Notes under the pieces: generated by a model
Told to the model about the DNA's origin: nothing
The model's input: only the letters and a program-made list of their open reading frames with translations
The model's database searches: none
Source of the DNA: Penicillus capitatus
Lineage: Eukaryota > Plantae > Chlorophyta
Reading direction: 5' to 3'
Assembly (NCBI GenBank): GCA_965649825.1
Contig: OZ287697.1
Coordinates: forward strand, 1,660,351 to 1,724,350
Length of the DNA: 64,000 nt
Shown here: positions 7,019 through 62,862 of the stretch, piece after piece
Layout: each line of letters starts with the position of its first letter
How positions within the stretch are numbered: the first letter of the stretch is position 1
Translations under genes and position numbers: made by a program

Positions 7019-7052
7019 AAGAGTGAGAAAGGAATGGTTTTTAACAGCGTTT

Positions 7053-7855: not shown

Positions 7856-7864
7856 GAAGTGCCG

Positions 7865-10948: not shown

Positions 10949-13900
10949 TTATATGCCGGAACAGATGCTGGAAAGGTCATCAAACTTCGAAAACCCCATG
11001 AACTCAGCCACACTTCGAATCTTGAAGTGCAACCAGATCCTCAGGACATATAACGTTCTAGCATCGGAATCTACGATAATTTCGGTCGCTCTCAAGGAAA
11101 GTCTGACATAGGCAACAAAGTAATTGAAAAGAAACGAAACGAAAATGACAAGAGAAATAATGTTAAGGAGAACACACAGAACTGATATGGCTAAGCGACC
11201 AACGTCAACAGTGAGACTCTCACTCTTCAGCATGGCTGCAAGCAGTGTTGTCAGGAGCGACACGAACAGAGAGAATATGTCGATTCTGTTTAGCTCATCG
11301 AAGCTCTGCCTGTAAGGCATTGCCACAATCTGCGCACCCATGGCGAGGGTCAAAAACACGGCTGCTCCAGAGATGGGCAGTGAGCTGTCAAAACGATGAC
11401 TGCAAAACACCAGGAAGGCGATCCCTGCCTTCCTTGCAACAATCGCAACCTCCCAGTACCTACGATGTCCGTGTCTGTAGCTGCGGTAGAGGAATCCAGT
11501 GCTCTGGTAGATCCAGCTGTCGGTGTCGTCCAGCTGCTCTTCTGAGGATCCGAGGATGACGATGAAGGCGATCAGCAGCCCGCCGTAGACGAGGAAGACG
11601 AACGACGCGATCAGAATCACCAGCATTAGGTGATCCCCTTCGAAGCACCTGAGACTGGTGTCCACGGCCCAGAAGCTGATCATCTCTCCTTCCGTCACAT
11701 CCATGATCTCGGCATCATTCTCCCCAGTCGCATCCAGAGTGTTGTAGGCATCAACGCAGAGGACAGTGCTGAGAGTCGTCTTGATCACCGGAACAGAAGT
11801 GACATACCAGAGAGCCATTAGAGACAGCAGAGATCTCTGCATGACGTAGCGGATCGGCCGATTGATTCGATGGAATAGCAACGCAACTGCCATCCAGAAC
11901 ACCACGAGCAGCAGGAACACAGATGCAGGGACAAGACAGACGCTGACGATAGAAGCCCATACGGTTGGATGCAGTGACTGGTCTTCTCTGTCCAAACACA
12001 CGACAGAACGTCGGATGCTGTCCACTGCGAGTCCTCCGAAGAACTCTGCACAGCACACGGCGATAGAGGGTAGATACAGATCGTCGGTTTCTATGGATGT
12101 GTACCTGCTATCTTTGCCATGACAAGTATAGGGACAGCCCATCCAACATCCAGTGATGCGATCAGCACTGTCATCTGAATGTAGTTTAGCATTATCTGCA
12201 GCAAAGACTGTCAGTTTCACTAAGTCTACAGAATTTCTTCGGACTTTGAATATCTCGACCGCTTTCCACTGTCCCAGGGTCACTTCGGCGACGGTCAGCC
12301 CTACTTGAATATCATCCGTGTCTTGAATCATAAGCGAGTTCTCCTGGGACGCCTGTCTCTCAGACGTCTCTGCCTCGGCTGGAAGCGAAAGCTCTCTGAG
12401 CTGAATACTGCGGGGAACTCTTCGATGGCCGGAAAGCATCGCCCGTCTGTTGCTAAAGGTACTCAGTGTCCCTCTGATCGTAACACCGGACAAGACAAGC
12501 AGGATCACTGCCGCAGAGCAAATCGTCAAAACATTGCCAAATGTCGTCGGGCATTCTTCGCATCTGGAAGACACGGAGGATCCATACGAGGTGTTGCATG
12601 CTCCACAGAGAGGACCGGTGTGGCCCTGAATCCAAGAACACAAAGACTCAGAAGATCAGAAGACCGACTAATCACTCACCTCAGCACACTGTTCTTGTTG
12701 ATACTCTTCAACTGTGGTCGCATTGATGCTGCAGCTCTTCATGTCTCTTGTCAGGTTTGTCAACGTCTCAACGCGGTTGTCGAATTTGCATGCATACGAG
12801 GTCAGGCACCTCGTAATGTTGACTGAGCAGGGCGACGCGTGCCAGTACCCATCATTCGGAATGATCACTCCTGTCGTACAGTTGCCATTCTCGGGACAGG
12901 GCTGACATTCTTCTCCTTCAGGGTCGAAGTTATAGGCAGAGGTGCTGCAGTTGCTGCAGATCTTGGTTTCACCGACAGGTACTTCTCCAATGGTGCAGTT
13001 TCGCACATGGACGGTAATGTTCAGCGAATCGATGACTTCTCTCTCATTGAATTGGCCACGAAAACTGTAACTGTCAATGAATCTAATTGTTATGTTGTAG
13101 ATGCCTGGAAGTCCAAAGCCGATCACGTGAGGAAACTTGGCCGTCTGTCCATCCACAGGCAAAGAAATGTTACCAACTTGAAACCCTTCTGATGTTGACA
13201 GTGTGGCAAGGATATCGGGGTTGCCCATTCTCGCCGGACCCTGCTTCAACTTATCCAAGAATTCCACCGTCACCCTTGGCAGTTGGTTACCACCGACATA
13301 GTCTCGAACTTCGAATCCTTTTCCACTCGAAACTTCTGTCTTCTCTCCCTTATACTCGACAGTCATCTTCGCCGTCGTGGCATCCGTAGCAACAACCTGC
13401 CCGTAGCTGCCGGCAGAATTGTTTCTCCATGCAGGACAGTAGGTCTCATCAATGGTGATACGACGGAAAGAACTCCAGTCCTTCTCTTCAAGAAATGTCA
13501 GATTGTCATTCCTGGATGACGACTTGCATTGGAATCTAATGCCTTGTAGACGGTTTGCAAAGATTGCCCCTCCACCGAAGATCGCACTGTTATTCTCGAA
13601 CTGAGTGTCGATGATTGTCACAGCAATGCATCCGTATTTCTTCTTCCAGCAGTTTCGACCGTAGCTTTCATATAGGAAAAGACCCCCTATAAAGCAAATC
13701 GATAAGGATGCTTCCTCACTGCTGATGTCAGTAGATTCACCTCCGGATTCTGCAGTATTGTTTAGTATTCTGCTCTCTTCTAATTGGGTAATAGACGTTC
13801 CACGTCGGTATCTAGTAATCGAGATGGCGCCTCCGCCTATGGTGCCACTAGACGAGACCGTGGCCGCGTTCGAAGCGAACAGACAGCCCGTGCAGAGAAA

Positions 13901-16264
13901 TTCAGAATGCCGTGCGTTTACTGCTCCGCCTCTCGTGTCTGCTGTGCAATTTGACACACTCAAGTCCTTTGCCTTGAAGATGGAAGCTTCTAAACTGATC
14001 GCTCCACCCTCTGAGCCTGCTGTGCAGCTAGATATATTAAAGTGCCTTGCCTCAAAGGTGGAATCGCTCAAGTAAATCGCTCCGCCATATCCCGCAGATC
14101 CATTTATCATCGTTGCATGTTTTACGAAAACTGAGCTCTTGCCAACCGCGTAGAGAAAGCCGCCTTCATATGGGAGATAACTTTGAGGACCAGCTCCATC
14201 CCTAAATCTGGAGTGATGAATAATCAGCGTCGAGCTGTTCGTAGAGATGGATCCTCCTGCGTCATGCGCCAAATTGTTCACAAATGTCACACTGAAGAAC
14301 CTTCCCACAGAGTTCTCACTCTGTTCAACGGCTCCTCCGCTATAACCGAAGCCATTCTTGAATACTGAGTCGCTCACGGTAAGGTTGGAATCCGAAGTGA
14401 TCAATATACTGCCGCCACCTCCGATTTCTGCACGATTTCCATCGGCAGTCAGTTCATTCCCTATGATGTGAGAGTCGACCGAACGGATTCCTCCTCCATG
14501 TTTTTCAGCACGGTTCGATAGAAATCTCGAGCTGTCGATTACTACTGACGCATTTCTGAAATACAGAGCGCCGCCTGAACGAGCTCCGTTTCCTTTTAGG
14601 ACAGAGTCGGTCATCTTCACTAAACGGGACCCATCCACGTGCAGACACCCTCCCTTCAAAGTAGCCTTGTTCTCGACACAGGTCATGTGTGTGACATTGA
14701 GTTCGGAATTCTGCGCATAGATTGCTCCACCAGACTTCTCAGCTCTGTTCCACGAAAAACGACAGGAGCTGATTGTCAAAGAACTTCTATTCCGGAGAGA
14801 GATGGTCCCGTCCATCTCAGCAGCATTGCCACGGAATTCACAATCCTCGAGAGTGATGTGCGACTCTTGTGCGTTGATGGCCACTCCGTAACTTGCTTCA
14901 TTCCTCTCGAAACTGCAATTGCGGATGAAAGCGGTTGCTTCTTTGAGATGGACGCAGGCACTGTTGGAATCGTCTCCTTCAACCGAATTCTTCGTGAAGT
15001 TGCCGTTTGACAGATTGAAAGAACCGCCTTCCATCTGCAAGATAGGGAAACTGTTCTCGGAAGCCTTGATCCCGTCAGCAGATGTCGAGGACTGAGCAGG
15101 CATCCAAACGATTGCCGAACGGGAAGATATAGATAACATTGGTCGATTCTGTCTAATGGTGATATTATGGAGTGTGTTCTGTTTTGCCAGAAGAAGACCA
15201 CAGACTCCATTGCAGGTGTTCCTCTGAAAGTCGAAGTCTTCAATCTCCAGTTTTGAGCAGGATGAAGCATTTGCTTGGATGGCCACTGCTCCGCCAAAGA
15301 AACGATTCTCTCTGAACCCGATGTGATGCAGTCGGATGGTTCCGATGGCGTGTTCAGAGGCACACTTCTCGACGCTGATGATGGACTCCAATGCACCAGA
15401 CACGACGAATAGACATCCTTTCACAACAAGGTCTGTCAGAGTGACATTAGTGGTACTAAAAACAGATGCGTTTAACGTCATCAAGCCAGGTGGAGTATGC
15501 ACTTACCGTAGAGAAAACAGTCCTTCGTTCATCTGCGGACAGGTGAGGATGGTTCGCTTTTCAGAGGCTGAAATCTCGACGTTGTCCTGCTCTCCTCCCG
15601 GGACGTAGCCGTGTATCGTCAGTGGCCATGGGATGACAGTGCGAGAGGGTGGACGGATAGTTTTTGAAGTGTCGAGCAGCAGAACATCTCCCGGTCGAGA
15701 ACAGTTGACGACGAGCTGAAGGTCGTCCTCTATCTCTTCGAGTACTGCCGAGTTGAGCAGCCACTCTCGCGTGGCAGCATTCAGATAACGGCGACGCTGC
15801 GCCGTTGAAAGACGACAGGAGGCCCCTGTCCAAAACACGACAACACAGTCATTGACATGACGTGACGTGGCTGCGAATGGGACGAACCTGCTGTCGCCTC
15901 AGCGTCTAGGTTCACCTGGCGAAGGGTGCGCACATCGCTTCTTCCCTAGGCGCCGAAAGACGACCCTCTCCGCGCTGCTTGTGCCGAGAGGTGGACATAC
16001 CGGAAGCGGTAGGGCTGTCTTGAATGGTACAGATTTGGTACTTGGAACGGGCATAACAGGCTTGTCATCCACTTCTGCGAAGCCAATAGCGAAGCACTGT
16101 GTTGCCAACAAAGCAGTAGTAATTAAAGCCATGATCTTGCCGGCAGGCGCTGTTGTCAGTGCATGCCTTGTCTGTGTTAACCCTGGGTCCGTTGATGCGC
16201 TTTCGGCGACAACGCCGGAGTTCATACTCATAACCGAAAGAACTGGTTCTGTCTTCGCTTTCAT
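10949..16264 (-). CDS. Receptor-like paralogue A: signal peptide + Pmp-like beta-helix repeats + stalk + Cys-rich region + multi-pass TM domain
   Basis: Many GGA[ILV]…FxxN repeats in ORF 12668..15502; CxxC/CP..G.C…GYW Cys-rich stalk; about 8 hydrophobic segments with a YWEVAIVARK motif in 10949..12643. A consistent GT/GC-AG splice model gives an uninterrupted frame. Confidence 0.8.
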
Positions 16265-16789
16265 GTTGTTTGAGATGCAGTGGCTGCGACTTCTGCAGTG
16301 TACTCGGTCGATGCGAAACGAATGGCTGTTGCAAAGTGCAGATTTCTCTTGACACGACTGGACCATCGGCATCGGCACAATAGCGACAGCACATGACGGT
16401 ATCTGTACCTAGTGCGTTGTAGCATTTCATCGCTGTCCACATGCTATTCAACGCGCTGAGATCACGTCCACCTCCTGTTCTGTGGCCAAACCGAAACTGG
16501 GGTAAACGGTAGCGGCGCAGGCGACGTAGACAGGCGAACCCAGTTTTGAGCATACGCCCGTCTGGTGTCGACAGTCGGTAGCAACAATGGTCGCCTCGAC
16601 CGTCATCTAACTGAAAGCCTTGTCCCTCGTCTGATGGTGACCTTTCTGTCTCGACACACGCACTCGGTTAGAGGTCTATTTCTCTGAAGCACGGCCCGAC
16701 GATTTAGCATCGAATTTTTCACACGCTTCGTGCTGTTGTCCCCAACAGTACCGAAGATACTCCATGGCGTACTGGGATCGGGTCGAGTC

Positions 16790-24555: not shown

Positions 24556-27500
24556 TCATATGCCGGAAGAGATACTCGAAAGATCATCGGAATTGGAGAA
24601 TCCAACGAAATCAGCCACACTTCGAATCTTGAAGTGCAACCAGATCCTCAGGACATGTAACGTTCTGGTACTGGGATCCACGATGGTTCCGGTCTCTTTC
24701 AGGGAGAGCTTGACGTAGTCAACGAAGTAACAAAAAAGAAAAGAAACAAGAACGATGAGGGCCGTGATGTTAAGGAGAACACACAGAACTGAAATGGCCA
24801 AACGACCAGCATCGACGGTAAGACTCTCATTCTTCAGCATGGTTGCAAGAAGTGTTGTCAGGAGTGACACGAACAGAGAGAATATGTCGATTCTGTTCAG
24901 CTCATCGAAGCTCTGCCTGTAAGGCATCGCCACAATCTGCGCACTCACGGCAAGCGTCAAGAACACGGCAGCTCCAGAGATGGGAAGCAAGCTGTCGAAG
25001 CGATGGCTGCAGAACACTAAAAAGGCGATCCCAGCCTTCCTTGCAACAATAGCAACCTCCCAGTACCGACGCCTCCCGTCTCTGTAGCTGCGGTAGAGGA
25101 ATCCAGTGGTCTGGTAGATCCAGCTGTCGGTGTCGTCCAGCTGCTCTTCTGAGGACCCGAGGATGACGATGAAGGCGATCAGCAGCCCTCCGTAGACGAG
25201 GAAGACGAACGACACGATCAGAATCACCAGCATTAGGTGATCCCCTTCGAAGCACCTGAGACTGGTGTCCACGGCCCAGTAGCTGATCATCTCTCCTTCC
25301 GCAGCATCCATGACCTCGCCACCATTCTTCCCGGTCGCATCCAGAGTGTTGTAGGCGTCGGCACAGAGGACAGTACTGAGAGTCGTCTTGATCACCGGAA
25401 CTGACGTGACGTACCAGAGAGCCATCAGAGACAGCAGAGATCTCTGCATAACGTAGCGGATCGGCCGACGGATTCGATGGAAGAGCAGATCGACTGCCAT
25501 CCAGAACACCACGAGCAGCAGGAACACAGATGCTGGGACAAGACAGACGCTCACGATCGAGGCCCATACGGTTGGATGCAGTGACTGGTCCTCTCCGTCC
25601 AAACACACCACAGAACGTCGGATGCTGTCCACCGCGAGTCCTCCGAAGAACTCTGTACAGCACACGGAGATGGGGGTAGATACAGATCAACAGCTTTCTC
25701 AGAGATGGACCTGCTATCTTCGCCATGACAAGAATAGGGACAGCCCATCCAACATCCAGTGATGCGATCAGCACTGTCATCTGAATGTAGTTTAGCATGA
25801 TCTGCAACAAAGACTGTCAGTTTCACGAATGCCACAGAACTTCATACTTTGAACATCTCGACCGCTTTCCACTGTCCCAGGGTCACTTCGTTGACGATCA
25901 GGCCTACTTGTATATCATTCGTGTCTTGAATCGCAAGCGAGTCTTCCTGGGACGCCTGTATCTCAGACGTCTCTGCCTCGGCTGGAAGCGAAAGGTCTTC
26001 AAGCGGGATGCTGCGGGGAATTCTTCGATGGCCGGAAAGCATCGCCAGTCTGCTGCTAGCGGTACTCAGTGTCCCTCTGATCGTAACACTGCACAAGACA
26101 AGCAGGATCACTGCCGCAGAGCAAATCGTCAGAACATTGCCGAATGTCGTCGGGCATTCTTCGCATCTGGAAGACACGGAGGATCCATACGAGGTGTTGC
26201 ATGCTCCACAGAGAGGACCGGTGTGTTCCTGAATCCAAGAACACAAAGACTCAGAAGATCAGGAGATTGACTAATTACTCACCTCAGCACACTGTTCTTG
26301 TTGATACTCTTCAACTGTGGTAGCGTTGATGCTGCAGCTCTTCATGTCTCTTGTCAGGTTCGTCAACGTCTCAACGCGGTCGTCGAATTTGCATGCATAC
26401 GAGGTCAGGCACCTCGTAATGTTGACTGAGCAGGGTGACGCATGCCAGTACCCATCATTCGGAATGATCACTCTTGTCGTGCAGTTGCCATTCTCAGGGC
26501 AGGGCTGACATTCTTCTCCTTCAGGGTCGAAGTTATAGGAAGAGGTGCTGCAGTTGCTGCAGATCTTGGTTTCGCCGACAGGCACCTCGCCAATAGTGCA
26601 GTTCCGCACATGGACGGTAATGTTCAGCGAATCGACGACTTCTCTCTCGTTGTATTGATTGCTAAAAGTGTAAATGTCAACGAATCTGATGTTTATGTTG
26701 TAGATGCCTGGCAATCCAAAGCCGATCATGTGAGGAAACTTGGCCGTCTGTCCATTCACAGGCAGAGAAATGTTACCAACTTGAAACCCTTCTGATGTTG
26801 ATAGTGTGGCAAGGATATCGCCGATACCCATTCTCGCCGGACCCTGCTTCAACTTATCCAAGAATTCCACCGTCACCCTTGGCAGTTGGTTACCACCGAC
26901 ATAGTCTCGAACTTCGAATCCTTTTCCACTCGAAACTTCTGTCTTCTCTCCCTTATACTCGACAGTCATCTTCGCCATCGTGGCTTCCGTAGCAACAACC
27001 TGCCCGTAGGTGTCAGCAGAATTGTTTCTCCATGCAGCGCAGACAGTTTTGTCGGATGTAATACGACGCAAAGAACTCCAGTCCTTCTCTTCAAGGAACG
27101 TCAGTTTGTCATTCCTGGATGACGAGTTGCATTGGAATCTGATGCCTTGTAGACGGTTTGCAAAGATTGCCCCTCCACCAAATATCGCACTGTTATTCTC
27201 GAACTGAGTGTCAATGATTGTCACAGCAATGCATCCGTATTTCTTCTTCCAGCAGTTTCGACCGTAGCTTTCATATAGGAAAAGACCCCCTACAAAGCAA
27301 ACTAATAAGGATGCTTCCTTGCTGCTGATGTCAGTAGATTCACCTCCGGATTCTGCAGTATTGTTTAGTATTCTGCACTCTTGTAATTGGGTAACAGACG
27401 TTCGGCGTCGGTATCTAGTAATCGAGATGGCTCCTCCGCCTATGGTGCCACTAGAAGAGACCGTGGCCGCGTTCGAAGCAAACAGACAGCCCGTGCAGAG

Positions 27501-38391: not shown

Positions 38392-38425
38392 TCCTGATTC
38401 CCGAAACGAAACGACACAACGCGTA

Positions 38426-40541: not shown

Positions 40542-40836
40542 CCGCTCAACAGCTAAGGAAGAATCAATTGCCCTGCTAATGATTCTGATGGTTCCCTTAG
40601 ATGACGAACAACGCGGGGCAAGACACAGGGGATGCAGGCGAGGCGATCATCGACGTCGCTTTTGCGGATGCTTCTTGTTCGGCGCTGCTGTCGTGGTCAC
40701 TGCCGTGAGGCGTTCTGTAGGTCCGAGCACGCGTTGCGGGTTTTGAGCTGACGGTTACTCTTGATTGACCTCTTTTGCGACTTAATCCCCATGACACGAG
40801 AATTCGCCCGCAATTTGTCTTTTGACTTTTTGACCA

Positions 40837-43800: not shown

Positions 43801-46800
43801 TTCAATCCACTAATTTTTCGAACAACTTCGCAGAAAATGGAGGAGGCATCCAGCTGATAACATCTCGCTTGTTATCCAATAATGTGACATTCTTCAAGAA
43901 TACTGCTGGTAACTTTGGCGGCGGACTTGTGGCAGGAGAAGCAAGTTCTTTCCGATTGACGAATGTCTCTTTGATTCAAAATACCTCGCCATATGGCGGA
44001 GGCGTGGTCTTGATGCAAAATTCTGATGGGTACATGGACGAGTGTTTTGCGCATAGCAACTCCGCCCTTATACACGGAGGGATGGCCAACGTAGACAACA
44101 GCAAACTGACAGTTCAGGGAGGAACATTTCTGGAAAACGAAGCGACTGGTGGGGCAACGTTTGTCGTAGTCGATGGCCGACTGAGCCTTGATGGTGTTGA
44201 TGTCATCAACGGATCCAGCACCCACTGGGGTGGCGGCCTGTATGCAATAGCTGGCAGTTTTGTGACGATTTCCCGTTCCAGTTTCGTCTCCAATCGTGCC
44301 GAGTTTGGAGGAGCAATAAATCTGCGCGAGTCTTATCTCTGGGCTGACGAAGTGCGCTTTGTCAGATGCCGGGCGTCCATTGACGGGGGAGCGATCCATG
44401 CCAACGTCTCATCGTCCATGCTGTGCACGAACTGTGCGTTCGATAACAACTTCGCCGTCGGAAAGGGAGGTGCTGTCAACATTGAATCAGAAAAGACGCA
44501 GCTCCTCGCCTATCAGTGCGACAACTGCACCTTCTCGGACAATCGCGCGGTTCTCGGAGGTAATCGATCAGCCCTCATCTCTTCCGTCGTCGTTACTGTG
44601 TTCAACAGGGGCCATTCATCTGGTAACGGCAGACGGGGCGAAGGACTGCACGGCACACAACGCCAACTGCACCTTCCTCGCTCTGCGAAGCGCACATTTC
44701 ACTGGAAACCAAGCATCATCGGCAGGCGGCGCCATTCTCTCGAGCGATCTCAATGCCATCCGTGTCCGCTGCTCCAACAGATCGCGCCCTTATTCTCATC
44801 GCTACGTGACGAGGAAGGAATTCGAATCTCTGGGCATCCTCAACTCCTTTGACCGCATCTGCGCCAAGTGGAAGGGAAACGAAGCGGACGTTTATGGGGA
44901 TACTCTGGCCTCTTACGCTCGCCGTGTCAAAAAAGTGATCCGTTATGAAGATCGGGATTTCGAAGAGGAAGTCAAAGGCAATCGATACTTTGTGCGAAAC
45001 CATGTCAGTGGAACGCAGATCCCCAGTCTATACGTCGAGGCGGTGGATGCTCTGGGACAGGGACCCGCCAGCGGCGCCGGAAATGCCACGGTTTTGGCGA
45101 CCATGGTATCTCCCGAAAAACTCTTCTCTGGATCCATCGGCGTGCGACTGGACGAAGGGGTAGGGAACTTCTCAGGAGTGGCCGGATACCGCGAAGCTGG
45201 ATTCTATAACGTCCGCGTGAACTTCAGTGAGGAGAGCATTCCGCCCTTCACCATTGTCGTCGAGATCCGAGGATGTTTGATCGGCGAGGTCGTGGCGGCC
45301 AACGGGACCATCTGTCAGCCTTGCAACGGCAACAACTACAACTTCTTCCCAGATCGTGCCGATCCAGGATGCCAGTCGTGCCCAGACAACGCCGACTGTG
45401 ACACGGCCGTCATTCTCCCGGATGCTGGGTACTGGCATCGAACTCCATGCTCAGACCACATACAGGAGTGTCTGACCAAAGACGCCTGTGACGAAAAGAA
45501 CAGAACGAAAGATCTCCGCGAACATGCAGCGATCGTCGAGAATTGCCAGTTTTCCGAGCCCTTTATTCTGAGCTATGCCGACGTCCAATGTCGCGAGGTA
45601 CGTATCCCGCATCATCCATGGAGTCCTGATGGTTATATGACGCCTCTGTTGCTCGATAGGGTTACAGAGGTCCTCTGTGTGGTTCTTGCGAGGCTTCTTA
45701 TGGGCGCATACAATCCTTACGTTGTGGACCCTGTGGTTTTCGGTTCGTCAGTTTCATTCTGGTGCTCTTCATCATCATCGCTCTTCTCGTCCACAGCGCC
45801 ATAACTATCACAGGCAGTCTTCCTCAAAAGAAGACGCTCGTCAGAGATATGAATCAACACCAAGGGACTTCATCAACTCTGCCAATAGAATCCATGTCCC
45901 CTCCACGTGCTCCTGGAGAGAAACGAGAGTCGCCCAATGCAGTCCCTCATGCTCGTAAAATGCAATCCGTCGAGATGCCGCGTAGGAGGCACGATCCTTC
46001 CGAGAGCCTCGGGTTGTCTAGGCTTCAACCAACTCCACCACCAACAACTCCACCGCAAGCTTCGGCGCCAGAAGAGCCCGAGCAGCCGAAAAAAGACACC
46101 GTGCAGCTTGCCAAATGGAATGGCACCGAAATTATCAAGGTAACAATACCACTCTCACTCTTCTCGTTCATTTTGTCTCGTCTAGATAGCGAACAACTAT
46201 TTTCAAGTGATTGAGATTGCTATGTCGATCAATGTGAATTGGACAACGGCACTCACCGGCGTCTTTAAAGCAGCCCGTAAGATCTCAACGTATTCTCATT
46301 TGCGTCTGATGCACGATGGAATTGTCATTGCAGAGTTCTTGAGCGCTACGGTGTCGGAAGCAGTGGCCGGTTCCGTAGAATGTCTCATCCCAGAGAATTT
46401 TGCCATTCCTCGATCGGCTATGCCCACCGTGTTCAACATCATGGTGCCGATGCTGGTGTCAAGCTTGTATTATATTTTCTGGTTCATCGTCTTCCAATAC
46501 ACCAAGGAGACCATCAGCTTTTTGGCCAAGCGCTGCATCCTCAGCTTCATGGTAGTGTCCTACCTCTCCTACATCACCATCACCGAGACCGCCATCAACG
46601 TCCTGTCCTGCATCGATGTCTACGATTCACTGGAGCTCGGTTCGAATGCGACGCATGCCTACTGGGCAGTGGACACATCTCTGCGATGCTATGAAGGTTC
46701 CCATGCCGTGCTTGTTGCCCTCATTGGATGGCCCGTCCTCGTCTTCTTCTCTTTCGGTTTTCCCGCTGGCCTCGCTGCACTGCTGGTGCTCGAGAGAAAG

Positions 46801-47394
46801 AGACACAGCATGGAGAATGAGTGGCTGTTCGAGGCAACCGGTTTCATGTACCGTGCCTACAAGACGGAATACGTCTACTGGGAATGGGTCATCATACTGC
46901 GTAAGGCGATCTTAGCAGTGGTGGCTGTTTTCTCTTACGAACTCGGTGGCAATTTGCAGGGTGTCTTGGGCGTCTCCGTCCTGGTATTTTCCCTTTACTT
47001 TCAGACTATCTGCCAACCCTACGATAACGATTTTGCAGTGCTCAACCAATACGAAGGCCTTTCATTGCTCATTTGCTCGCTGACGTTTGTCTCTGGCCTT
47101 TTTTTCAACGACGAGCGTACCTCTGATACTGCCCGAATCATTCTCACGATTGTCCTGTTTTCTGCACATTTGGGGATGTTTGTTTTTTTCTTCGTTGTCT
47201 TAATCAAAGCTGCCGCAGAATTTTCTAAAGCTGTTTTGGAGGCTGAATTAATTGACTATAACTCAGAGAAAGGATGGTTTCATGTGATCCTGGTGTTTCT
47301 GCGATCGCGCTGCCCGATATGGCTGGTTCTGCTTTTCAAGCGTATGATGGGACATCCTGTCCTGACAGTCCCAGGCAATACTGAACATGCCTAA
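40837..47394 (+). CDS. Receptor-like paralogue E (most divergent, longest repeat array)
   Basis: Signal-like exon MRRDYDSLRRSPVHTALCFLLLAQGLEA. ORF 41751..44852 is about 1000 aa of GGA/GGG-FxxN repeats, followed by a Cys-rich stalk (CQPC…CQSCPDNADC…GYW) and a TM domain with YWAVDTSLRCYEG and YWEWVIILRK. Confidence 0.8.
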
Positions 47395-51105: not shown

Positions 51106-54100
51106 TTATATGCCGGAACAGATACTTGAAAGGTCATCAAACTTCGAAAACCCAAGAAACTCAGCCACACTTCGAATCTTAAAGAGCAACCAGATTCTCA
51201 GCACATGTAACGTTCTGGCATCGGAATCCACGATGGTTTCGCTCTCGCTCAAGGAGAGCCTAACATAGGCAACAAAGTAACAAAAAAGAAACGATAGCAG
51301 AACGGTGAGAGTCGTGATGTTGAGGAAAACACACAGAACTGAGATAGCTAACCGACCAGCGTCAATGGTGAGACTCTCACTCTTCAGCGTGGTTGCAAGC
51401 AGTGTCGTCAGGAGCGACACGAACAGAGAGAATATGTCGATTCTGTTCAGCTCATCGAAACTTTGCTGATAAGGCATTGCCACCGTCTGCGCACCCATGG
51501 CAAGCGCCAGGAATAAGGCAGCTCCGATGATAGGCAGCGAGCTGTCGAAGCGATGACTGCAAAACACCAGAAAAGCGATCCCTGCCTTCCTCGCGACAAT
51601 AGCAACCTCCCAGTACCGACGACGTCCATCTCTGTAGCTGCGGTAGAGGAACCCCATGGTCTGATAGATCCAGTCATCTGTGTCCTTGAGCTGTTCTTCT
51701 GAGAATCCGAGGATGACGATGAAGGCGATCAGCAACCCACCGTAGACAATACCAACAAACGTGATAATCAAAATCACCAGCATCATGTGGTCCCCTTCGA
51801 AACACTTCAAACTGGTATCAACGGCCCAGTAGCTAACCATCACCCCTTCCGTAGCATTTACGATCTCGCCACTATTCTCCCCAGTCGCATCCAGGGTGTT
51901 GTAGGCATTGATACAGAGGACAATGCTGAGAGTTGTTTTGATCACAGGAACTGATGTGACGTACCAGAGAGCCACTAGAGACAACAGAGATCTCTGCACG
52001 ATGTAATGGATCGGCCGGCGGATTTGATGAAAGAGTGCAATTGTGATCCAGAACATCATGAACAGCAGGAACACAGATGCAGGAACAAGACAGACGCTCA
52101 CGATAGAGGCCCATACAGTTGGATGCAGTGACTGATCCTCTCCGCCCAGACAAACCACAGAACGTCGGATGCTATCCACTGCGAGTCCTCCAAGGAACTC
52201 TGCACAGCACACAACGATGGAGGGTGGAAACGTGTTGTCAGCTTTCGCAGATGCGGACCTGATATCTCTGCCATGACAAGTATAGGAACTGCCCATCCGA
52301 CATCCAGTGATGCGATCAATACTGTCATCTGAACGTAGTTCAACATTATCTGCAACGAAGACTGTCAGTTTCACGAAGGCGACGGAGCTTCGCACCTTAA
52401 ACATTTCGACCGCCTTCCAGTGTGCCATGGTCATTTCAGTAACGGTCAGCCGTTCGTGCAATTCATTCGTATCCTGGGCTTTTGGTGACTCCTGAAACAA
52501 CTGCCTTTCTGATGCTTCTACCTCGCATGGAAGTGGAAGGTTATCAAGTTGAATGCTGCGAGGATTTTTTCTTTCGCCGGAGAGCATCGTCAATCTTTTG
52601 CTTACCGTACTAATTGTCCCTCTGATTGTAACGGCAGACAAGATAAATAAGATCACTGCCGCAGAGCAAATCGTCATGAAGTTGCCCGATGCTGTCGGGC
52701 ATTCTTCACATCTGGAAAACACGGAGGATCCATAAGAGGTGTTGCATGCTCCACAGAGAGGACCAGCGTGACCCTGGATCAGAAAACATAACTATAGTTC
52801 AGAAGATAGGATGAGCGACGAACTAATCACTCGCCTCAGCACACTGCTCTTGCTGATACTTCTCAATTGTGGTCTCGTTGATGTCGCAGCTCTTCACGTT
52901 CCTCGTCAGATTTGTCAATCTCTCAACCCGGTCGTCGAATTTGCATGCATAGGAGGTCAGGCACCTCGTGATGTTGACTGAACAGGGTGACGCGTGCCAG
53001 TACCCATCATTCGGAATGACCACTCTTGTCGTACAGTTTCCATTCTCGGGACAGGGCTGACATTCTTCTCCTTCCGGATCGAAGTTATAGGTAGAGCTGC
53101 TGCAATTGTTGCAGATCTTGGTTTCACCAACAGGCACCTCTCCAATGGTGCAGTCGCGAACGTGAACGATGATGGTGAATGAATCGATGACTTCTCTTTT
53201 GTCAGCATCTTCAAGATCTGTTTTATGGAACTGTTCACGAAAAGAGTAACTGTCAGCGAATCTAATTGTCATGTTGTAGATGCCTGGAAGTCCAAAGCCG
53301 ATCACGTGAGGAAATTTGGCAGTCTGTCCTTCCACGGACAGAGAAGAACTACCAACTTGAAACCCTTCTGATGTTGACAATTCGGCGATGATTCTCTGAT
53401 TGAAAAAGTCGATGGTCGCCGGACCCTGTTTCAGTTCATCCAGCAATTCCACTGACAGCCTTGGAAGCTGGTTGCCACCGACATAGTCTGGAATTTCGAA
53501 TCCTTCTCCAGTCACGACTTCTGTTTTCTCTCCTTTGTACTCGACAGTCATCTTGGCCATCGTGGCCAACGTAGCAACAACCTGCCCGTAGATGCCAGCA
53601 GAATTGTTTTTCCATGTAGGACAGAGAGCCGTGTCGGGTGTAATACGGTTCAAAGAACTCAGGTCCTTCTCTCCAAGGAATGTCAGATTGGCATTTTCAG
53701 ATGACGAGTTGCACTGAAATCTGGTGTTCTCCAAACAGTTTGCAAAGATTGCTCCTCCAGCATGAGTGGCATTGTTTCCTTCGAATTGAGTGTCAATGAT
53801 TGCTGCAGCAGTACATTCATATCCGTTCTCCAACGATCGTGGATAGTATACCTCGTCTAAATAAAGACCCCCTACAAAACAAACCAATAAAGATGCTCCG
53901 TTGGTGCATGTTTTAGTAGATTCACCGCCGAATTCCGCACTATTGTTTATTATTCTGCTCTCCTGTATTTGCATAACAGATCTGCGGCGTCCGTATCTAG
54001 CGATCGAAATGGCACCTCCGCTACCAAGCAAGGCCTTGTTCGAAACAAGAAGGCAGTTTGTGCACAGGAATTCAGAATCTTCTGCTTCTACTGCTCCTCC

Positions 54101-56230
54101 ACTTAAGCTTGCTGTGCAGTTTGACACGTTCAAGTCCTTTGCCTTTAAGATAGAATCGTTCAAGTAGATCGCTCCGCCCAGTTCTGCGGATCCATTTGTC
54201 ATCGTTGTATATGTCACCAAAACTGAGCTGTGATGCGTCGCGGATAGAAAGCCACCACTGTACTCGTCATAGGGCCCAGTACCAGATCCAACACCTCTGA
54301 ATCTTGCGTTATGAATAATCAATGTTGCATTATTCGCAAAGATGGCGCATCCTTCCTCATCAACCAAATTGTTCACAAAGGTCACATTGAAGAACCTTCC
54401 CACAGAGTTCTCACTCTGTTCGACTGCTCCTCCCCTAAGACTGGCGCCGTTCTTGAATACTGAGTTGTGTACGGTAAGGTTGGATTCTGAAGTGATCGAT
54501 ACACTGCCACCACCTCCGCGATTTGCACGATTTCCGTCAGCAGTCAGTTCATACGCAATGACGTGTGAGTCGACCGAATAGATTGCTCCGCCAGACTTTT
54601 TAGCTCTGTTCGACAAAAAGCGACAGGAGTCGATCGTCAAGGAACTTTTATTCCGTAGACAGATGGCACCATTCATCCCAGCTTTGTTGCTCTGGAACGT
54701 GCAATTTGTGAGAGTGGCGTTCGATATTCGAGCGTTGATCGCCACACCATAACTTGCTTCGTTCTCTTCGAAACTGCAGTCACGGATGAAAGCAGATGTG
54801 TCTTTCATCTTGATACAGGCACTGATGGAGTCGTCTTCCTCACCACTTGCCGAATTCTTCGTAAAGTTACTGCTTGACAGATCGAAGGAACCTCCTTCGA
54901 CTTCGAATATGGTACAACTATTCTCGAGAGCACTGATGTTGTCGGCAGATGTCGAAGATCGAGGAGGTGCCCAAATGATCGCCGACCGGGAAGATAAGGA
55001 AGGTATCGATCGATAATGTTCCACGGAAAGGTTCTGAAGTCCATTCTCTTCGGTCAGAAGCAGATCGTTGACTCCATTGAGCGATGATATTCGTCGATTC
55101 TGTCTGATAGTGATGTTCTGGAGCCTGTTCTCTTTGCTCAGAAGAAGACCGCAGACTCCATTGCAGATATTCCTTTGGAAGTCGAAATCTTCAATCTCCA
55201 GTTTTGAGCAGGATAACGCGTTTGCTTGGATGGCAACTGCTCCACCAAGAAAACGATTTTCTCTGAAACCGATGCGATGCAACCGAACGGTTCCGATGTC
55301 TTGTTCAGAGTCGCACTTCTCGAAGCCGATGACAGATTCCAATGCGCCAGAAACGACGAACAAGCATCCTTCTACGACAAGGTCTGTCATAGTGACATTA
55401 GTGGTACTAAAAACAGATGCGTTTAACGTCATCAAGACAGGTGGAGTATGCACTTACCGTAGAGAAAACAGTCCTTCGTTCATCTGCGGACAGGTGAGGA
55501 TGGTTCGCTTTTCAGAGGCAGAAATCTCGACGTCGTCCTGCTCTCCTCCCCTGATGTAGCCGTTGATCGTCAGCGGCCATGGAATGACGGTGCGAGAGGG
55601 AGGCCGGATCGTCTTCGCGGTGTCGAGCAGAAGCACGTCTCCCGGTCGAGAACAGTTAACGACGACCTGGAGATCGTTTTCGATCTCGTCGAGGACTGTC
55701 GAGTTGAGCAACCACTCTCTTGTCTTGGCCTTCAGATAACGGCGACGCCTCTCCTTCGATAGATGACAGGCGGTTTCTATAGAAAACGTTACAGTACAGT
55801 CATCGATGCGATGCGACGTGACTGCGAAAGGAATGGACCTGCTGTCGTCTCGGAGTCTGGGTTGATGTTCACTTGGCGAAGGGTGCGCGCATCTCTTCTT
55901 CCCTAGGCGCCGGAAAAGGATCCTCTCCACGCTCCTTTTGCGAAAAAGTAGACGTACCGAAAGCGCCAGGGTCTTCTTCAATGATACAGACTTGGTATTT
56001 GAAACGTGCACGTCAGGCTTTTCGTTTGCTTCTGCGAAGTCGATGACGAAGCACTGTGTTGCCAACAAAACAGTAGTAATTAAAGCCATAATCTTGCCGA
56101 CAGTCGCTGTTGTCATTGCATGCCTTGTATACGTTAACCCTCGGTGCACCAACGCGCTTTCGGCGATAACGCCGAAAGCAATACTCACAACCGAGAGGAC
56201 CGAAAAACCCGGTTCGGTCTTCGCTGGCAT
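51106..56230 (-). CDS. Receptor-like paralogue C (A/B subfamily, fewer repeats)
   Basis: ORFs 55454..56230, 52823..55453 and 51106..52722 are colinear with A/B. The model needs GC donors at 56097 and 52834. Confidence 0.8.
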
Positions 56231-57148
56231 GTTGTTTCCGGTGCAGTGACTACGACTTGTGCAGTGTACTCGGCCGATGCGAAACGAATAGCTGCTGTAC
56301 AGTACATGCAGATTTCCTTTGACACGGTTGGGGCGACTGGTGGTAACCTTTGTAGCATTATCTTAAGTCTGGCCGAAGTGACAGGCATTTAAGATGGATC
56401 ACTTTTTACCTAGCGTCCGCGTGATAAGACGACTCAATTTCGAAGGATTTCCATAAATCACGTTTTAAAGTAGATTGCAAACTGTCTGTTTAGATTAAAC
56501 TTGCGTCCGCTCCTTTCTTCGAAGCTACATCTCAAGCGCGCATCGGCTCGATTTTTCGATATCTCACAAGTCCGGATATCAACCGTTGGATAGGTATTGA
56601 ACAGTACTGTACAAAAAAACTACAGACAGAGTTTGAAATCTCTGTCTGTGTAGTGCTCTTTTCGCATTTCACTTTCCAGTGTGGCTTCCTTCCTCTGGCG
56701 TTTCAAGAACGGATTTCAGCGCTTCGGTTTAGAGAAGTCCACGAAAATGATTCACGTACTGTGTGGCTCGGGAAAACAAAGACTGCGAAGCGACATCCAG
56801 GATCGATGTCCTCGTATACCACTCGCGTTAGTATTACCCGTACGCACGCCGTTTCTCGCCTCGGATTATCCAATTTTCTCATCGAGTTTTCGAAGGACAC
56901 GTCGCTGTCACCTCGACGCGAGCATCGCTTGCTGGAAGGCAAAGTCGATTGCGGGTTCGATGGCGGAAGCGCGAGAGAACGTATCGGTGAGACCCCTTCG
57001 TCAAGTCACGTTCACAGTTTGGTTTGATGCCAGAAAGACCTGTTGCATCTTCCCTGATCCACACGCGTGTGTCTTACACGCCAAATGTCAAAAGCGAAGC
57101 ATTTGAGCTCTGCTTGACAAGAAGAAAACGGTGCTAGCAAGACAGTAC

Positions 57149-60100
57149 TTATGTACCAAAAGAGTGAGAGGGATGTTTGTCACACTTGAGAAATCCTAGA
57201 AAGCCAATGACACGCTTAAGGTCAGAGCGCAACCAGATTCTATAGACTCTCAAGGTTCCGGCGTCCGAATCAGAGAGTGTTCCTTTATCCCTGAGGACGA
57301 CCTTCAAGTATTCGGCAGCATAGACCAAAAGAAAGGAACCAAGAACAACAAACGTGATGACGTTGATCAAACCGCACAAGAGTGAGATGGTCAGTCGGGC
57401 CCAGTCGTTGACGAAACTGTCACTTTTCAACATCGAAGCAAGAAGTGTGGTCAAGAGTGACACGAAAAGTGAGAATGCGTCGATCCTGTTCAGTGCATCA
57501 AACCTCTTTCTGTAGGGCGATGCCACGATCTGCACTCCGATGGCCAGGGAGAAGAAGAGCGCCGCTCCGATAACGGGTAATGGATTGTCGAAGCGATGGG
57601 CGCAGAAGACCAGAAAAGCGATCCCGGCCTTCCTTGCTACGATAACAACCTCCCAGTACCGACGCTTCCCATGCCGGTAGCTCCGATAAAGGAACCCCAT
57701 GGACTGGTAGATCCAGCCATCGGTATCGTTCAGCCGCTCTTCCGAGGACCCAAGGATGGCGATGAAGGCGATCAGCAGCCCGCCATAGACGATGCCGACG
57801 AACGACAGGATGAGGATGGCCAGCATTAAGTGATCCCCTTCGAAGCACTTCAAACTGGTATCAACGGCCCAGTAGCTTATCTCTTTCTCTCCGTCTGTCG
57901 CATCCAGGACGTTGTGGGCGTTGACGCACAGGACGGTGCTGAGTGCTGTCTTGATGACTGGCACAGAAGTGATGTACCAGAGGACCATGATGGTCAGGAG
58001 CATTCTCTTGGCAAGGTAACGGAACGGTTTTTCGACACCGCAACGAATAGCTGCCGCTATCCAGAAGAGTGCGAGCAGCAGCAAGACGAAGGCCGGAACA
58101 ATACAGACACTCACGATGGACGCCCACACTGTCTTATGCAAACGTGCGTCTTCGCTGGCCAAGCAGATCGCAGAATGCTGAATACTGTCTATGGCGAGTC
58201 CACCGAAGAACTCTGTATCGAACGACAGAGACTTGGATCAGAAACGATGCGACACAAGCATGTGTACCTGCGGTTTCTGCCATGATGAGGACAGAAATCT
58301 CCCATCCAACGTCCAGAGAGGCGAGAAGCACCGTCAAGCTCAGGAAGTTCAGTGTGATCTGCCAAACAGTTTGTCAGGATCAAGCGCTCGGCAGAGTGTC
58401 GCACCTTGAACATCTCCACTGTCTTCCACAGTGCCAGCGTTTTTTCTGTGGCAGGTAGCCCTTCTGCCTGTTCGTTTTTTGCAGAGTCGTCTCGCCTGTC
58501 CACAGGGGAACGTGCTTTCCGTCTCCTGCTCTTTCTGTTCGATGAAGCGACGGGAGACATTTCGATGCAGTGGGCGGTACTGTCCTTGCTGGAGAGCGTG
58601 GTCTGTTTCTCCTTTGCCACAGTCAAGTTCCCTCTGATCGTTACGCACGACAATGCCGCAAGAACCAACACCGAAACACAAATCACTGCCACATCGCCGA
58701 CAACGGGTCGACACTTCCTGCACCTGGAGGAGAGGGAGCTACCGTACGAGCTCACACACGATCCGCACAATGGGCCACAGTGTCCCTGGAGAAAACAAGC
58801 CCTTGTCAACCACATCCCAGATGATCATACAGATCTCTCACTCTAGTGCACTGCACCTCTTGGTACTCTTTGATCAACCCATGGCTCACATCGCAGTTCT
58901 CGATGTCCCCTGTCACGTTCCTCAGTTTTTCGGAACGCCCTTTGAAGTTGCAGGCATGGGAAGTGAGACATCGCTTGATGTGCACGGAACAGGGGGTAGC
59001 TAGCCAGTAGCCATCTTCCGGTAGGATCGCACTCGTCTCGCAGTCGCCGTTCTCGGGACAGGGACGACACTTGCCTGCTTTCGGATCGAAATTGTACATG
59101 GAGCTGCTGCACGGTGTGCAGAGCTTTATTTCCCCCACTGCCATTTCGCCAATCGTACAGTTTCGCACCACCACAGTCATCGTCAGTTCTCTGATGGCCT
59201 TTTCACTGAACGCAACTGTCATGTTATAGACATCTGGAGGTCCAAAGCCGACCATCGGAGGGAAGGTGATGTTGCCTTGCGGCATTCGCACAGAGATATT
59301 GCTGACCCCGAATGTATCTGGGGTGGAGAGCTTGGCAACAACCACCCGATGACCAATCGCAGGTGTCTGTTGGAGTGAATCGATCAACATCACGTTGAGC
59401 GTTGGCAATAGACTGCCGCCAAGGTAGTTCTCCAATACGTGCACTTCGCCACTCGCAATCTCTGCTCTCTTGTCCTTAGAATCGATGGCCATTCTCGCTT
59501 TGACGGCGAAGGATGCAACAGTCCGTCCGTAAAGCCCAGCCTGATTGCCTTTCCATGTTGCACAGAAATCGCGTTCGGATGCAAGGATGCGTGCCTGACT
59601 CAAGTCCGTTTCTTGGAGGAGTGTAACATCATCGTTCTCCAGAACGGGTGTGCAGCTGACTCGGATGGCCTCCAAACGGTCCACAAAAATCGCTCCTCCA
59701 GCAGATTTTGCAGAGTTTCCCTCGAAACGAGTGTCCGTGATCACTGCAAAGGAACATCTTTCGGCGTCATTCGGGCAATCTTCACCATTGAAACCACTCT
59801 GCCAGTAAAGTCCACCTAACAGGGCAGACTCAGTTAGTTGACTGCCTGGTTCTCTGGTAAAACACACCTCCTTTACGTGCTGTGTTGCGTGCCATCACAT
59901 TTCCTTGCAGCAGGAGAGCGAGTTTCTGCTTCCCATTGGACCTGAAGGCGATGCCACCGCCCTCTGTCATTGCTTCGTTTTCTCTGAAGCGGCAGTCGAT
60001 GCACTGGACGGTCGATCGCTTTGCTTTGATGCCTCCTCCCATCTTCGCTTCGCAGCGGAACACATCCAAACCCTTTGCTTCGAATGTTGTGTCGTTCAAA

Positions 60101-62862
60101 GCGATCGCTCCTCCATTGACAGCCCTTCCGCTTGTCATGGAAACGTTCTCCACGATCAGTGAACCATTTTGACTGACAACGATGAATCCGCCATGACGAA
60201 GAGCAAATCCATTGCTGAAGTGTGATTCTTGAATCTTCGCTGTCGCGTTACCAATAAATAAAGAACCACCGCTTTTATTAACGAAATTGCCTTTGAAAAT
60301 CACACGTGTCAAGCTTACCACGGAGCCGGATGCTATGTCTACTGCTCCTCCGAATAAAGCATTGTTGTTCTCAAACATCGAATCGTGAATAGTAAGATGA
60401 GACTCCCAATCGACAGAGACTCCTCCACCATACTCGCCAGCTTCATTTTTCGCCATTACGAGGCCCATCGCAGTGACATGGGATTTCAACAGACAGATAC
60501 CACCACCGGTGCCATCCACACGGCTTGATAGAACACTGGAATTGACCATCTTTGCAGACGCGTACAAGAGATCAGCTGCTCCGCCGTTGCCAAGACTCGA
60601 GCAATTGTGAAGAGTGGTCGATTCCAGCAGAAGATGCGCGTTCCTGAAGGCCAAACACCCACCATCATCCTTGACATGTCCATTGTCGAGTGTCGAGTAG
60701 TGCATGCGGACAAACGAATCTTCCACTGAGTGCACGAATCCTCCCTCCTCAGATGCTTCTCCATTTTTGAATGTGCATGATGTGAAGGACACAGCTGAAC
60801 CGGAAATGAAAACAGAACCACCGTAGGATTCTGCAGTGTTGTTGACAAAGGTGACGTGTGCAAAGCTTCCTGCCGCATCGACCCATCCACATCCGTTTGC
60901 TTCGTTCTTTTCTTCAAGGACTGGAACGGTGCATTTCTTGTTTCGGTGTCGATCTTGAACAAAAAGGCAATCCTGGACGACCAAAGCGCTACCGTTGGTG
61001 GCTGAGTTGTTGTCAAATTTGCAGTTGGCAATGGAAAAGACGGAGTGCTGTATCCACACAGCACCACCTCGGACAGCTGAATTCTTGATAAACGTGCTAT
61101 TGGCAATGAAAAGATCTGAGGCTTCGGTAAACACAGCGCCTCGTTCACCGCTCTTTTGTCGATTGTTGTTGTTCTTCAAGGCGGAATGTGATACTCTCAA
61201 TGACGAGGACCTGCCCACGTGCAGACAGCCACCAGTTAAACCAGCGTTGTTCTGGATACAGGTCAAGCGTCGTATACTGAGTTCGGATTTCTTTGCATCG
61301 ATTGCCCCTCCAGACTTTACGGCCCAATTGGAAAAGAAGAGAGAGGAGTGGAGAGTCAAGAAACTTCCATTCCGTAGAAGCACGGTCCCTTTAATCTTGG
61401 CCGCGTTGCTCCGGAACGTGCACTCCTTCAGAGTGATGTTCGATGCCTGTGCATTGATCGCTGCGCCGTAACTTGCTTTGTTTTCTTCAAAAGTGGAGTC
61501 TTGAATCAGGGCAGATGCGTCTTCGAGCTTGATGCAGGCGCTGGCGAAACGGTCTTTCACGACAGTTTCCGAATTCTTTGTGAAACTGCCGTTCGACAAA
61601 CGGAGAGAAGCTCCTTCTATCTCGAAGATCGGACAACTGTTGGCGAAAGCTCTGATCCGATCGACGGTTGCTGCGGATCGAGGAGGAGCTCGAACAATCA
61701 CGGATCCAGAGTTCGAAGACAGAATTGGTTCATTCTGTTCGATGGTGACGTTCCGAATCGTGTTTTCTTTGGCCAGAAGAAGACCGCAGACCCCGTTGCA
61801 GAAGTTTCCTCGGAAGTCGAAATCGTGTACCTCCACCGCTGAGCACGACGTGGCGTCTGCCTTGATGGCGGCGGCGCCATTGAGTCGATTGTCCCTGAAT
61901 TCGATGCGATGCAATCGAATGGTTCCTCTTGCGCGATCCGCGGTGCACTCCTCGACATCGACGATGGATTTTGCTGTGCCAGAAACGTCGTACAGGCATC
62001 CTTCGATGACAAAGTCTGTCAAGGTCACGTCGACGGCCCTACGTGTGAACGGTGCTGACATCGGTGCGACCGATGGAGCCAGCGCTTACCGAAATGTAAA
62101 CAGTCCCTCGTTCTTCTGAGGACAGGTGAGCACGGTTCGCTTGTCAGAGATAGAAACGTTGACGTCGTCGTGCTCCCCTCGCCGGACGTAGCCGTTCATC
62201 GTCAGTGGCCATGGAATAACGGTGCGCGAGGGAGGCCGGATCGTCTTCGTTATGTCGAGCAGCAGCAGCACGTCTCCTGGCCGAGAACAGTTGACGACGA
62301 GCTGAAGGTCGTTCTCTATGTCGTTGAGAACTTCCGAGTTCAATAACCACTCTCCAGAAGCGGCGTTCCGGTAACGGCGACGCTGCTCCGCTGACAGATG
62401 ACAGGCGACATCTGCGCAACGAAGATGGAACGTTTCAGTCGAGTCAGGAGGGCGCAGATCGAATGACGTTACCTGCCGTTTCCAGAGTCGTGAAAGATTC
62501 TTGGAGCAACGTACGATGACGCTCCCGTACCTACGCAAAAAATAAGCAGCTGTTATTACACCATTTCAGTCAACGGATGGCAGAACTCACGAAGTGTGTC
62601 AGCGTTTCGGTCTGGACTGCAGTGTCCAGTGGTAGAAGTTGGTCAGAACCTGTCCCATCTTCTGCGATAACACGAACAAAGAGTTTTGCTACAGGAAAAG
62701 TGTCTTCTTGCCAGAGAGCGACGCTGTCTGTGTCAACTGCAGCTGCGTCGACTCAGGGACGCCCAAGTCATCCGCGAGTACGCAGAGGATGATACTCATC
62801 ACTGACAGGCCGCAGAAGACAAGAGCACGTTTCTGACATAAGGGTGAAGAGAAAACCGCCAT
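57149..62862 (-). CDS. Receptor-like paralogue D (divergent); first exon(s) uncertain
   Basis: ORFs 62086..62538, 59830..62061, 58806..59867, 58189..58815 and 57149..58162 give the same domain order, with YWAVDTSLKCFEGDH and YWEVVIVARK. Signal-like start MAVFSSPLCQKRALVFCGLSVM at 62862. Confidence 0.75.

Follow-up and report, generated by a model that had tools for sequence, protein, structure and literature searches.

A tandem family of large predicted beta-helix surface proteins with a putative Pkd2/Flc-related membrane module in the green alga Penicillus capitatus

In this work we have examined a stretch of 64,000 nucleotides from the green alga Penicillus capitatus (assembly GCA_965649825.1, contig OZ287697.1, forward-strand positions 1,660,351 to 1,724,350), referred to here as the window, and in particular a cluster of five neighbouring paralogous genes which we call A to E. 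All five are intact: the spliced models run from ATG to a single terminal stop over 1556-2065 amino acids, as the initial annotation of this DNA had claimed, and their bounds match its coordinates exactly. From the N- to the C-terminus the products share a hydrophobic leader, a right-handed beta-helix, a beta-sandwich stalk, a Cys-rich module and nine transmembrane (TM) helices, and each of them is predicted to be a type-I-like surface protein with a glycosylatable ectodomain. By profile comparison, the TM module is a putative divergent homologue, or subfamily, of the PF06011 'TRP-like' domain of Schizosaccharomyces pombe Pkd2 and the yeast Flc proteins. Judging from the models and by analogy with Pkd2, there is about an even chance that these proteins are surface adhesion or strain sensors joined to a Pkd2-like cation-permeable module. 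In such a sensor, the beta-helix would reach a binding partner in the wall, in the extracellular matrix or on another surface; pulling on it, or the binding itself, would act by way of the stalk and Cys-rich module on the Pkd2-like module, through which cations (Ca2+) would then enter. We infer the surface location, the binding of ligands by the ectodomain and the Pkd2-like conduction of cations, while roles in immunity, allorecognition or wound sensing are speculation.

The organization of the membrane module was modelled for gene A, in which exon 7 (12245..12625, minus strand) covers the final Cys motif, then TM1 and a cytosolic loop that is disordered, and exons 8-9 (10949..12195, minus strand) encode TM2-TM9 and the C-terminal tail, which make up the PF06011-like core. 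The AlphaFold model (532 residues, 47 sequences) has a predicted local distance difference test score (pLDDT) of 83.7 and a predicted template modelling score (pTM) of 0.83, and consists of TM1 (a helix at residues 38-76, followed by pLDDT below 50), a disordered basic loop and then eight helices. Both the AlphaFold helices and hydropathy give a total of nine, so that the module of about eight helices proposed in the initial annotation corresponds to the core, to which TM1 has to be added. Two conserved motifs noticed earlier were seen again in the five-way alignment: [YF]WAVDTSL[RK]C[FY]EG[DS]H, which sits on a beta-hairpin loop of the core, and GF[LM]YR[SA]Y...YWE..I..RK, which is placed at the cytosolic face. 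The predicted topology has the N-terminus outside and the C-terminus in the cytosol, with Arg/Lys-rich loops inside and the Cys-bearing and glycosylatable parts outside.

To which known family does this module belong? The gathering cut-off of PF06011 ('TRP') is 28.5 bits. Single relatives score 15-26 bits, below this value, and 9 of 26 full-length relatives matched the family (best E 4.3e-8) in a constant register at profile positions ~160-400. For the consensus of 72 non-redundant modules the score rose to 44.6 bits (E 1.2e-11), with an alignment that covers positions 163-399 of the 426 in the profile. It is the consensus score, together with the matched relatives, that favours the PF06011-like option among those raised earlier for this module. 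An adhesion-type G protein-coupled receptor (GPCR) and a canonical 6-TM PKD/TRP channel had also been considered. The 7tm, 7tm_2, GAIN and PKD_channel/Ion_trans domains of Pfam matched neither the window copies nor their relatives, nine helices were counted, and a Foldseek search of the TM model against the PDB found no resembling structure (best E 0.28, TM-score at most 0.2), with no TRP, PKD or GPCR among the matches. A sequence profile search of the PDB with the module gave only noise. Because no PDB structure resembles what is a confident model, GPCR-like and canonical TRP/PKD folds are excluded. In S. pombe Pkd2 the TM domain is that of PF06011, the protein being laid out as signal peptide, ML-like ectodomain, TRP-like domain and cytosolic tail (PMC6727746), and reconstituted Pkd2 passes Ca2+ under membrane stretch (PMC9727806). 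Neither the window copies nor their relatives matched an ML or TRP_N domain; the ectodomain is built as a beta-helix here and from Kelch or LRR units elsewhere in the family.

In the ectodomain of A, exon 5 (13741..15455, minus strand) encodes most of the beta-helix, with degenerate GGx[ILV]/FxxN repeats; exon 6 (12680..13686, minus strand) supplies its remaining rungs and, after them, the stalk and Cys-rich module. In the AlphaFold model of the A ectodomain (m733897ebb862; 1046 residues, 26-sequence alignment; pLDDT 86, pTM 0.75), three-stranded right-handed beta-helix rungs occupy residues ~45-730 and the strands of a beta-sandwich residues 783-906, with a Cys-rich tail after them. In each of the five proteins the ectodomain is predicted to consist of an N-terminal cap, about 25-45 rungs of a rigid right-handed beta-helix, the beta-sandwich stalk and a Cys module of TNFR/ephrin-like type. 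The GGx[ILV] motifs number 9-21 per copy, and each ectodomain carries 22-30 N-glycosylation sequons and 37-51 Cys. Pfam Chlam_PMP (PF02415) matched above threshold in E (40.3 bits), D (24.4) and C (22.9), and fell below the 20.6-bit threshold in A (15.7 bits) and B (7.7 bits), in which the GGx[ILV]/FxxN motifs are present nonetheless. The GGA[ILV]/FxxN beta-helix of the initial annotation is therefore supported by motifs in all copies and by the AlphaFold fold, but by the Pfam family only in C, D and E. In the five-way alignment the repeat arrays differ by whole-repeat insertions and deletions, in agreement with the variable array described before, and the CxxC-rich linkers were found as CSNCS...CQPCPENGNC and GPLCG[AS]C...C..C. 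The cysteines of the Cys-rich module are invariant in 26 homologues.

The two halves of the protein evolve at different rates. Omega, estimated per domain among A-D by the Nei-Gojobori method, was 0.31-0.57 for the beta-helix, 0.31-0.42 for the stalk, 0.08-0.14 for the Cys-rich module, 0.16-0.19 for the TM core and 0.3-0.8 for TM1 with its cytosolic loop. Purifying selection acts on every domain; the rate of the ectodomain is 2-3 times that of the TM core. The core has also been kept behind quite different ectodomains. In Chlamydomonas and Gonium the same module follows Kelch and beta-helix ectodomains and is accompanied by a weak C-terminal EF-hand, and in P0238, a protein of 1365 amino acids from a Logan assembly, it is preceded by LRR domains (E 4e-26 against the hidden Markov model of the module). 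The Asn/Lys/Ile-rich composition of P0238 suggests a non-green, AT-rich protist and, with it, reuse of the module outside the green algae. These data bear on a possible, if doubtful, alternative: that the proteins are membrane-anchored adhesins or wall-membrane tethers which do not signal, the nine helices being an anchor or a Flc-type transporter unrelated to the ectodomain. The repeats do resemble those of Pmps and autotransporters, the structural matches of the ectodomain include the self-associating adhesin Ag43 and Hbp, one Ostreobium member bears the UniRef name 'Adhesin-like protein', and the yeast Flc proteins of PF06011 are described in PMC9600462 as flavin carriers or calcium-homeostasis factors, not as proven channels. 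However, a single helix would suffice for a tether, and yet only the Cys-rich module is more constrained than the TM core. This constraint and the retention of the core across Kelch, LRR and beta-helix ectodomains argue that it has a function of its own which is coupled to the ectodomain.

The same sample yielded another contig (L004, 313,748 bp), which is syntenic with window positions 953-22015 and carries an intact allele of A; comparison with it places the variation mainly in the ectodomain. DNA identity per kb was 97.5-100% in the flanks and about 96-98% over the TM core (96% at window 11-12 kb), as against 84-88% over the ectodomain and 5' end (13-17 kb); in protein, 21% of residues differ in the beta-helix and 3% in the TM core. 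Between the haplotypes the ectodomain is thus ~10 times more diverged than the flanks, and synonymous divergence from the allele was 0.25 in the ectodomain and 0.10 in the TM core. The relations among A, B and the allele switch along the gene: sites shared by A and B prevail at 14.5-13.75 kb, those shared by B and the allele at 15.25-15.0 kb, and those shared by A and the allele at the 3' end. The informative sites fall into 260 runs, where 518 +/- 13 were expected. Such switching in few runs is the mark left by gene conversion or recombination between paralogues and alleles, and it is concentrated in the ectodomain. An excess of variation over the TM region, as the initial annotation requires, is seen in the haplotype comparison. 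Sharp variation of the outer domain, both among gene copies and between the haplotypes, is what a recognition or sensing receptor would be expected to show. Taken together, the comparisons show a family which evolved by tandem duplication, with the membrane module constant and the ectodomains reshuffled by gain and loss of repeats and by gene conversion among paralogues and alleles. Could these be receptors for recognition? It is unlikely, though worth stating, that the proteins of this giant single-celled alga are self/non-self or microbe-recognition receptor-channels whose ectodomains are made hypervariable by gene conversion and long-lived alleles, and in which binding would be read out as Ca2+ entry through the Pkd2-like module.

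Several observations weigh against a sensor joined to a Pkd2-like cation-permeable module, or against its extension to recognition. PF06011 matched none of the window copies, even at E<=10, in a Pfam scan of the TM exons in which no Pfam family matched, so the link to PF06011 depends on the profile of the family. With Foldseek, no solved channel in the PDB was matched by the TM model. Even within PF06011 the label 'channel' is not secure: Flc1-3 of yeast are called flavin carriers or endoplasmic reticulum proteins. The hydropathy of the N-terminus shows a clear leader in B, C and D, but E has a short one and that of A is weak; the signal peptide attributed earlier to all five is thus clear in three of them. 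No domain has an omega above 1, either among A-D or between the haplotypes, and diversifying selection is not demonstrated; what holds of the conserved module and diversifying ectodomain of the initial annotation is the higher omega of the beta-helix and the varying number of repeats. The raised synonymous divergence of the ectodomain is better explained by gene conversion or old alleles than by adaptive change. Lastly, both 'haplotypes' were taken, as separate contigs, from a single metagenome-style assembly, and their source could be two individuals.

We regard it as quite unlikely that the proteins are membrane-bound polysaccharide lyases or epimerases which remodel the wall by means of a catalytic beta-helix. 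Such a role is suggested by the Foldseek matches of the ectodomain model, the best of which were PL6 alginate lyases (E 2e-4, 8-10% identity, a likeness at the level of fold), with chondroitinase B and alginate epimerases also among them, and by a relative in Chlamydomonas eustigma which is named 'Probable pectate lyase C' in UniRef. Nevertheless, these matches, at 7-13% identity and with low TM-scores, are mixed with phage tail proteins and tailspikes and the autotransporter adhesins Ag43 and Hbp, as expected for a generic beta-helix fold. No lyase family of Pfam matched the window copies or their relatives, only Chlam_PMP and the generic Beta_helix. Moreover, the divergence of the alleles in the beta-helix and the varying number of repeats would be unusual for a conserved catalytic groove. 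That the copies are decaying or transposon-carried and have no function is highly improbable: they do lie in a tandem array with a segmental duplication, and the genome holds very many copies, but the five models and the allele on the second contig are open over 1556-2065 codons with their splice sites kept, omega is well below 1, and the intergenic open reading frames (ORFs) of the window contain no reverse-transcriptase, integrase or transposase domains, and a transposon origin was rejected on this ground.

The gene models themselves were built from conserved splice sites and comparison of the paralogues. A tblastn search with the two long ORFs of A revealed the four further copies, whose amino acid identity to the pieces of A is 87% for B, 60-77% for C, 40-64% for D and 27% for E. 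Genes A-D have eight introns and E seven; these are GT/GC-AG introns of 45-66 nucleotides, and their positions are conserved even in E despite its low identity to A. Several of them are in frame and free of stops, and ORF lists are therefore misleading at this cluster. Gene A (10949..16264, minus strand, 1621 amino acids) has exons 16264-16141, 16074-16001, 15945-15888, 15825-15507, 15455-13741, 13686-12680, 12625-12245, 12195-12105 and 12045-10949, and its junctions agree with the homologue consensus. Gene B (24556..29875, minus strand, 1626 amino acids), mapped from the model of A, has exons 29875-29743, 29683-29610, 29554-29497, 29434-29116, 29064-27344, 27289-26283, 26228-25848, 25801-25711 and 25652-24556. 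Gene C (51106..56230, minus strand, 1556 amino acids), with the shortest repeat array, has exons 56230-56098, 56031-55958, 55902-55839, 55776-55458, 55406-53926, 53871-52835, 52773-52396, 52349-52259 and 52199-51106. Gene D (57149..62862, minus strand, 1760 amino acids) has exons 62862-62712, 62661-62591, 62530-62473, 62411-62090, 62038-59868, 59815-58842, 58785-58405, 58358-58268 and 58212-57149. Gene E (40837..47394, plus strand, 2065 amino acids), an old paralogue with the longest repeat array, has exons 40837-40945, 40992-41210, 41259-41571, 41624-44559, 44609-45597, 45660-46139, 46186-46276 and 46334-47394. The junctions AESG|GGLF, QCAE|GHTGPLCG and EIFK|IMLNYIQ restore the consensus of annotated homologues, and a 52-nucleotide intron (59867-59816) accounts for the change of frame between the two long ORFs of D.

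Three other interpretations of these reading frames were rejected. An alternative genetic code with TAA and TAG as sense codons was considered, but the apparent in-frame stops fall in short GT-AG introns, where TGA occurs too. The view of B as a pseudogene with a frameshifted 'MALLLL' leader and a lost acceptor was an artefact of a wrong 5' model, and with the upstream ATG genes A-D are all open. A model of A with a 45-nucleotide intron (15915-15871) was superseded by the three-intron 5' structure, which is supported by D. GC-AG introns were seen in A (16140-16075), C (56097-56032 and 52834-52774) and D (62711-62662), with donors GCAAGA and GCGAGT, whereas the first-intron donor of B is GTAAGA. 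Intron 1 of A (16132-16075) and of C (56089-56032) also contains an in-frame ATG which, if transcription began there, would give a textbook signal peptide, MALITTALLATQCFAIGFA|EVDD. This 'MALITT...' reading frame is frameshifted in B and absent from D; in A and C it may be an alternative first exon.

The window is nuclear DNA. Its neighbouring genes are eukaryotic and encode Vps36/EAP30, an ABC1 kinase, F-box/LRR proteins, a plant-type DCD-domain protein and an RCC1 protein. Among named organisms, the Vps36 fragment is closest to EukProt g3979.t1, which has a Caulerpa-style name (59%), and to Bryopsis sp. KO-2023 (58%), with trebouxiophytes and land plants at ~50%. Genes A and B lie in a duplication block in which 10725-16729 corresponds to 24320-30369 at 87.6% identity. 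F-box and LRR genes occur between the family genes, at 30863-32609 (plus strand), 35737-37074 (minus strand) and 16730-18442 (F-box 24.5 bits; LRR_14). The block 16730-18442 upstream of A, which holds short ORFs only, duplicates 31433-33173 upstream of B at 83% identity, and the same pairing of receptor and F-box/LRR gene is found elsewhere, at L003 on a contig of 576,620 bp. The unit of duplication appears to be a receptor gene together with an F-box/LRR gene. Just upstream of E are a DCD (development and cell death) gene (E 5e-34) and a gene with RCC1 repeats, at 37519-38880 (minus strand) and 38888-40036 (plus strand). The G+C content is 0.46-0.53 over A-D and their spacers (10001-30000 and 46001-64000) and 0.55-0.61 over the housekeeping neighbours and the 5' part of E (1-10000 and 30001-42000), and self-comparison revealed a short tandem duplication of ~80 bp at 35001-35308 with 75% identity.

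How large is the family, and where is it found? A profile search of 1.84 billion representatives returned 6061 matches at E<=1e-3, of which 421 reached E<=1e-30; the profile includes the stalk and Cys-rich parts, and the low end of the match list is thus not specific. The family has named members in Caulerpa lentillifera, Ostreobium quekettii, Bryopsis sp. KO-2023, Chlamydomonas reinhardtii, C. eustigma and Gonium, and those of O. quekettii include proteins named 'Adhesin-like' and 'Polymorphic outer membrane protein'. Assemblies of ENA yielded ~90 distinct terminal-exon ORFs, 42-96% identical to A, a count inflated by haplotigs and by the use of two assemblies (the four that were traced come from ERZ25074695 and ERZ26696514). 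At least six of them are on one contig of 576,620 bp, and ctg340394 of ERZ25074695 holds related copies. The source alga has dozens of copies of the family. In a tree of 134 modules, A-D belong to a large lineage-specific clade and E to an older clade near a Caulerpa gene, as would be expected of the birth-and-death family proposed in the initial annotation. A third set of long contigs in the same public data (P0246, from a contig of 4,082,648 bp, P0163, P0184 and P0190) contains a Vps36 93% identical to that of the window and further family copies; its origin is either another, related species or strain or else a homeologous subgenome. We found no functional description of the family in the literature, and the Bryopsis and Ostreobium genome papers make no mention of it. 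This agrees with the initial annotation, but the proteins of Caulerpa, Ostreobium, Bryopsis and Chlamydomonas are already public as 'hypothetical' or 'adhesin-like'. The family is uncharacterised rather than unseen. Its parts are known, and their combination is already in the databases. What had not been described until now is the architecture, the size of the family in siphonous algae and the pattern of haplotypes and mosaics.

Among known systems, the PF06011 proteins (S. pombe Pkd2, Saccharomyces cerevisiae Flc1-3 and Yor365c, Aspergillus nidulans TrpR and Cryptococcus neoformans Flc1) have the same layout of leader, ectodomain, multi-pass TM domain and cytosolic tail. Their TM core and that of the algal proteins are putatively homologous, and a solved structure exists for neither Pkd2/Flc nor the algal module (PMC9727806). 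The differences are clear, however: Pkd2/Flc proteins have a small ML-like lipid-binding ectodomain and are encoded by one to a few genes, whereas the algal proteins carry 1000-1500 residues of beta-helix, stalk and Cys-rich module, have an additional TM1 and a long cytosolic loop before the core, and form a large tandem family. With the chlamydial Pmps and the autotransporter adhesins Ag43 and Hbp they share GGA[ILV]/FxxN-type repeats, a right-handed beta-helix and organization in polymorphic multigene families. Unlike Pmps, they are eukaryotic, have introns and are anchored by nine alpha-helices, and the repeats of A and B are too degenerate for the Pfam threshold; the C-terminus is all-helical, with no match to the Pfam Autotransporter beta-barrel in the window copies or relatives. 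Polycystins, TRP channels and adhesion GPCRs share the design of a big adhesive or sensory ectodomain on a polytopic signalling module, but no similarity of sequence or fold to the algal TM module. Uncharacterised homologues in Caulerpa lentillifera, Ostreobium quekettii, Bryopsis sp. KO-2023, C. reinhardtii (XP_001700074.1) and Gonium pectorale have the same stalk, Cys-rich and TM architecture (E 1e-57 to 1e-210). The gene numbers of those in C. lentillifera are clustered too (g3760-g3785). Compared with these homologues, A-D of the window are a separate lineage-specific expansion, and the Chlamydomonadales members add Kelch repeats and a possible EF-hand.

If these proteins are indeed sensors joined to a Pkd2-like module, green algae would use the Pkd2/Flc module as a general output device for beta-helix, Kelch and LRR ectodomains, and the field of fungal Pkd2 would gain a large set of natural variants. 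RNA interference is reportedly established in Bryopsis (PMC12961179), and the orthologues there could therefore be tested. The peak of haplotype divergence and the mosaic of paralogues over the ectodomain make this cluster a specific candidate recognition locus of algae, and one that can be put to the test. Were the reading as hypervariable receptor-channels to prove true, the family would represent an immune or allorecognition type of receptor without a counterpart in plants or animals. The survival of coenocytic seaweeds hinges on the sealing of wounds, and a sensor of adhesion or strain with a Pkd2-like module would be a candidate for the sensing of wall integrity, wounds or partners in these algae.

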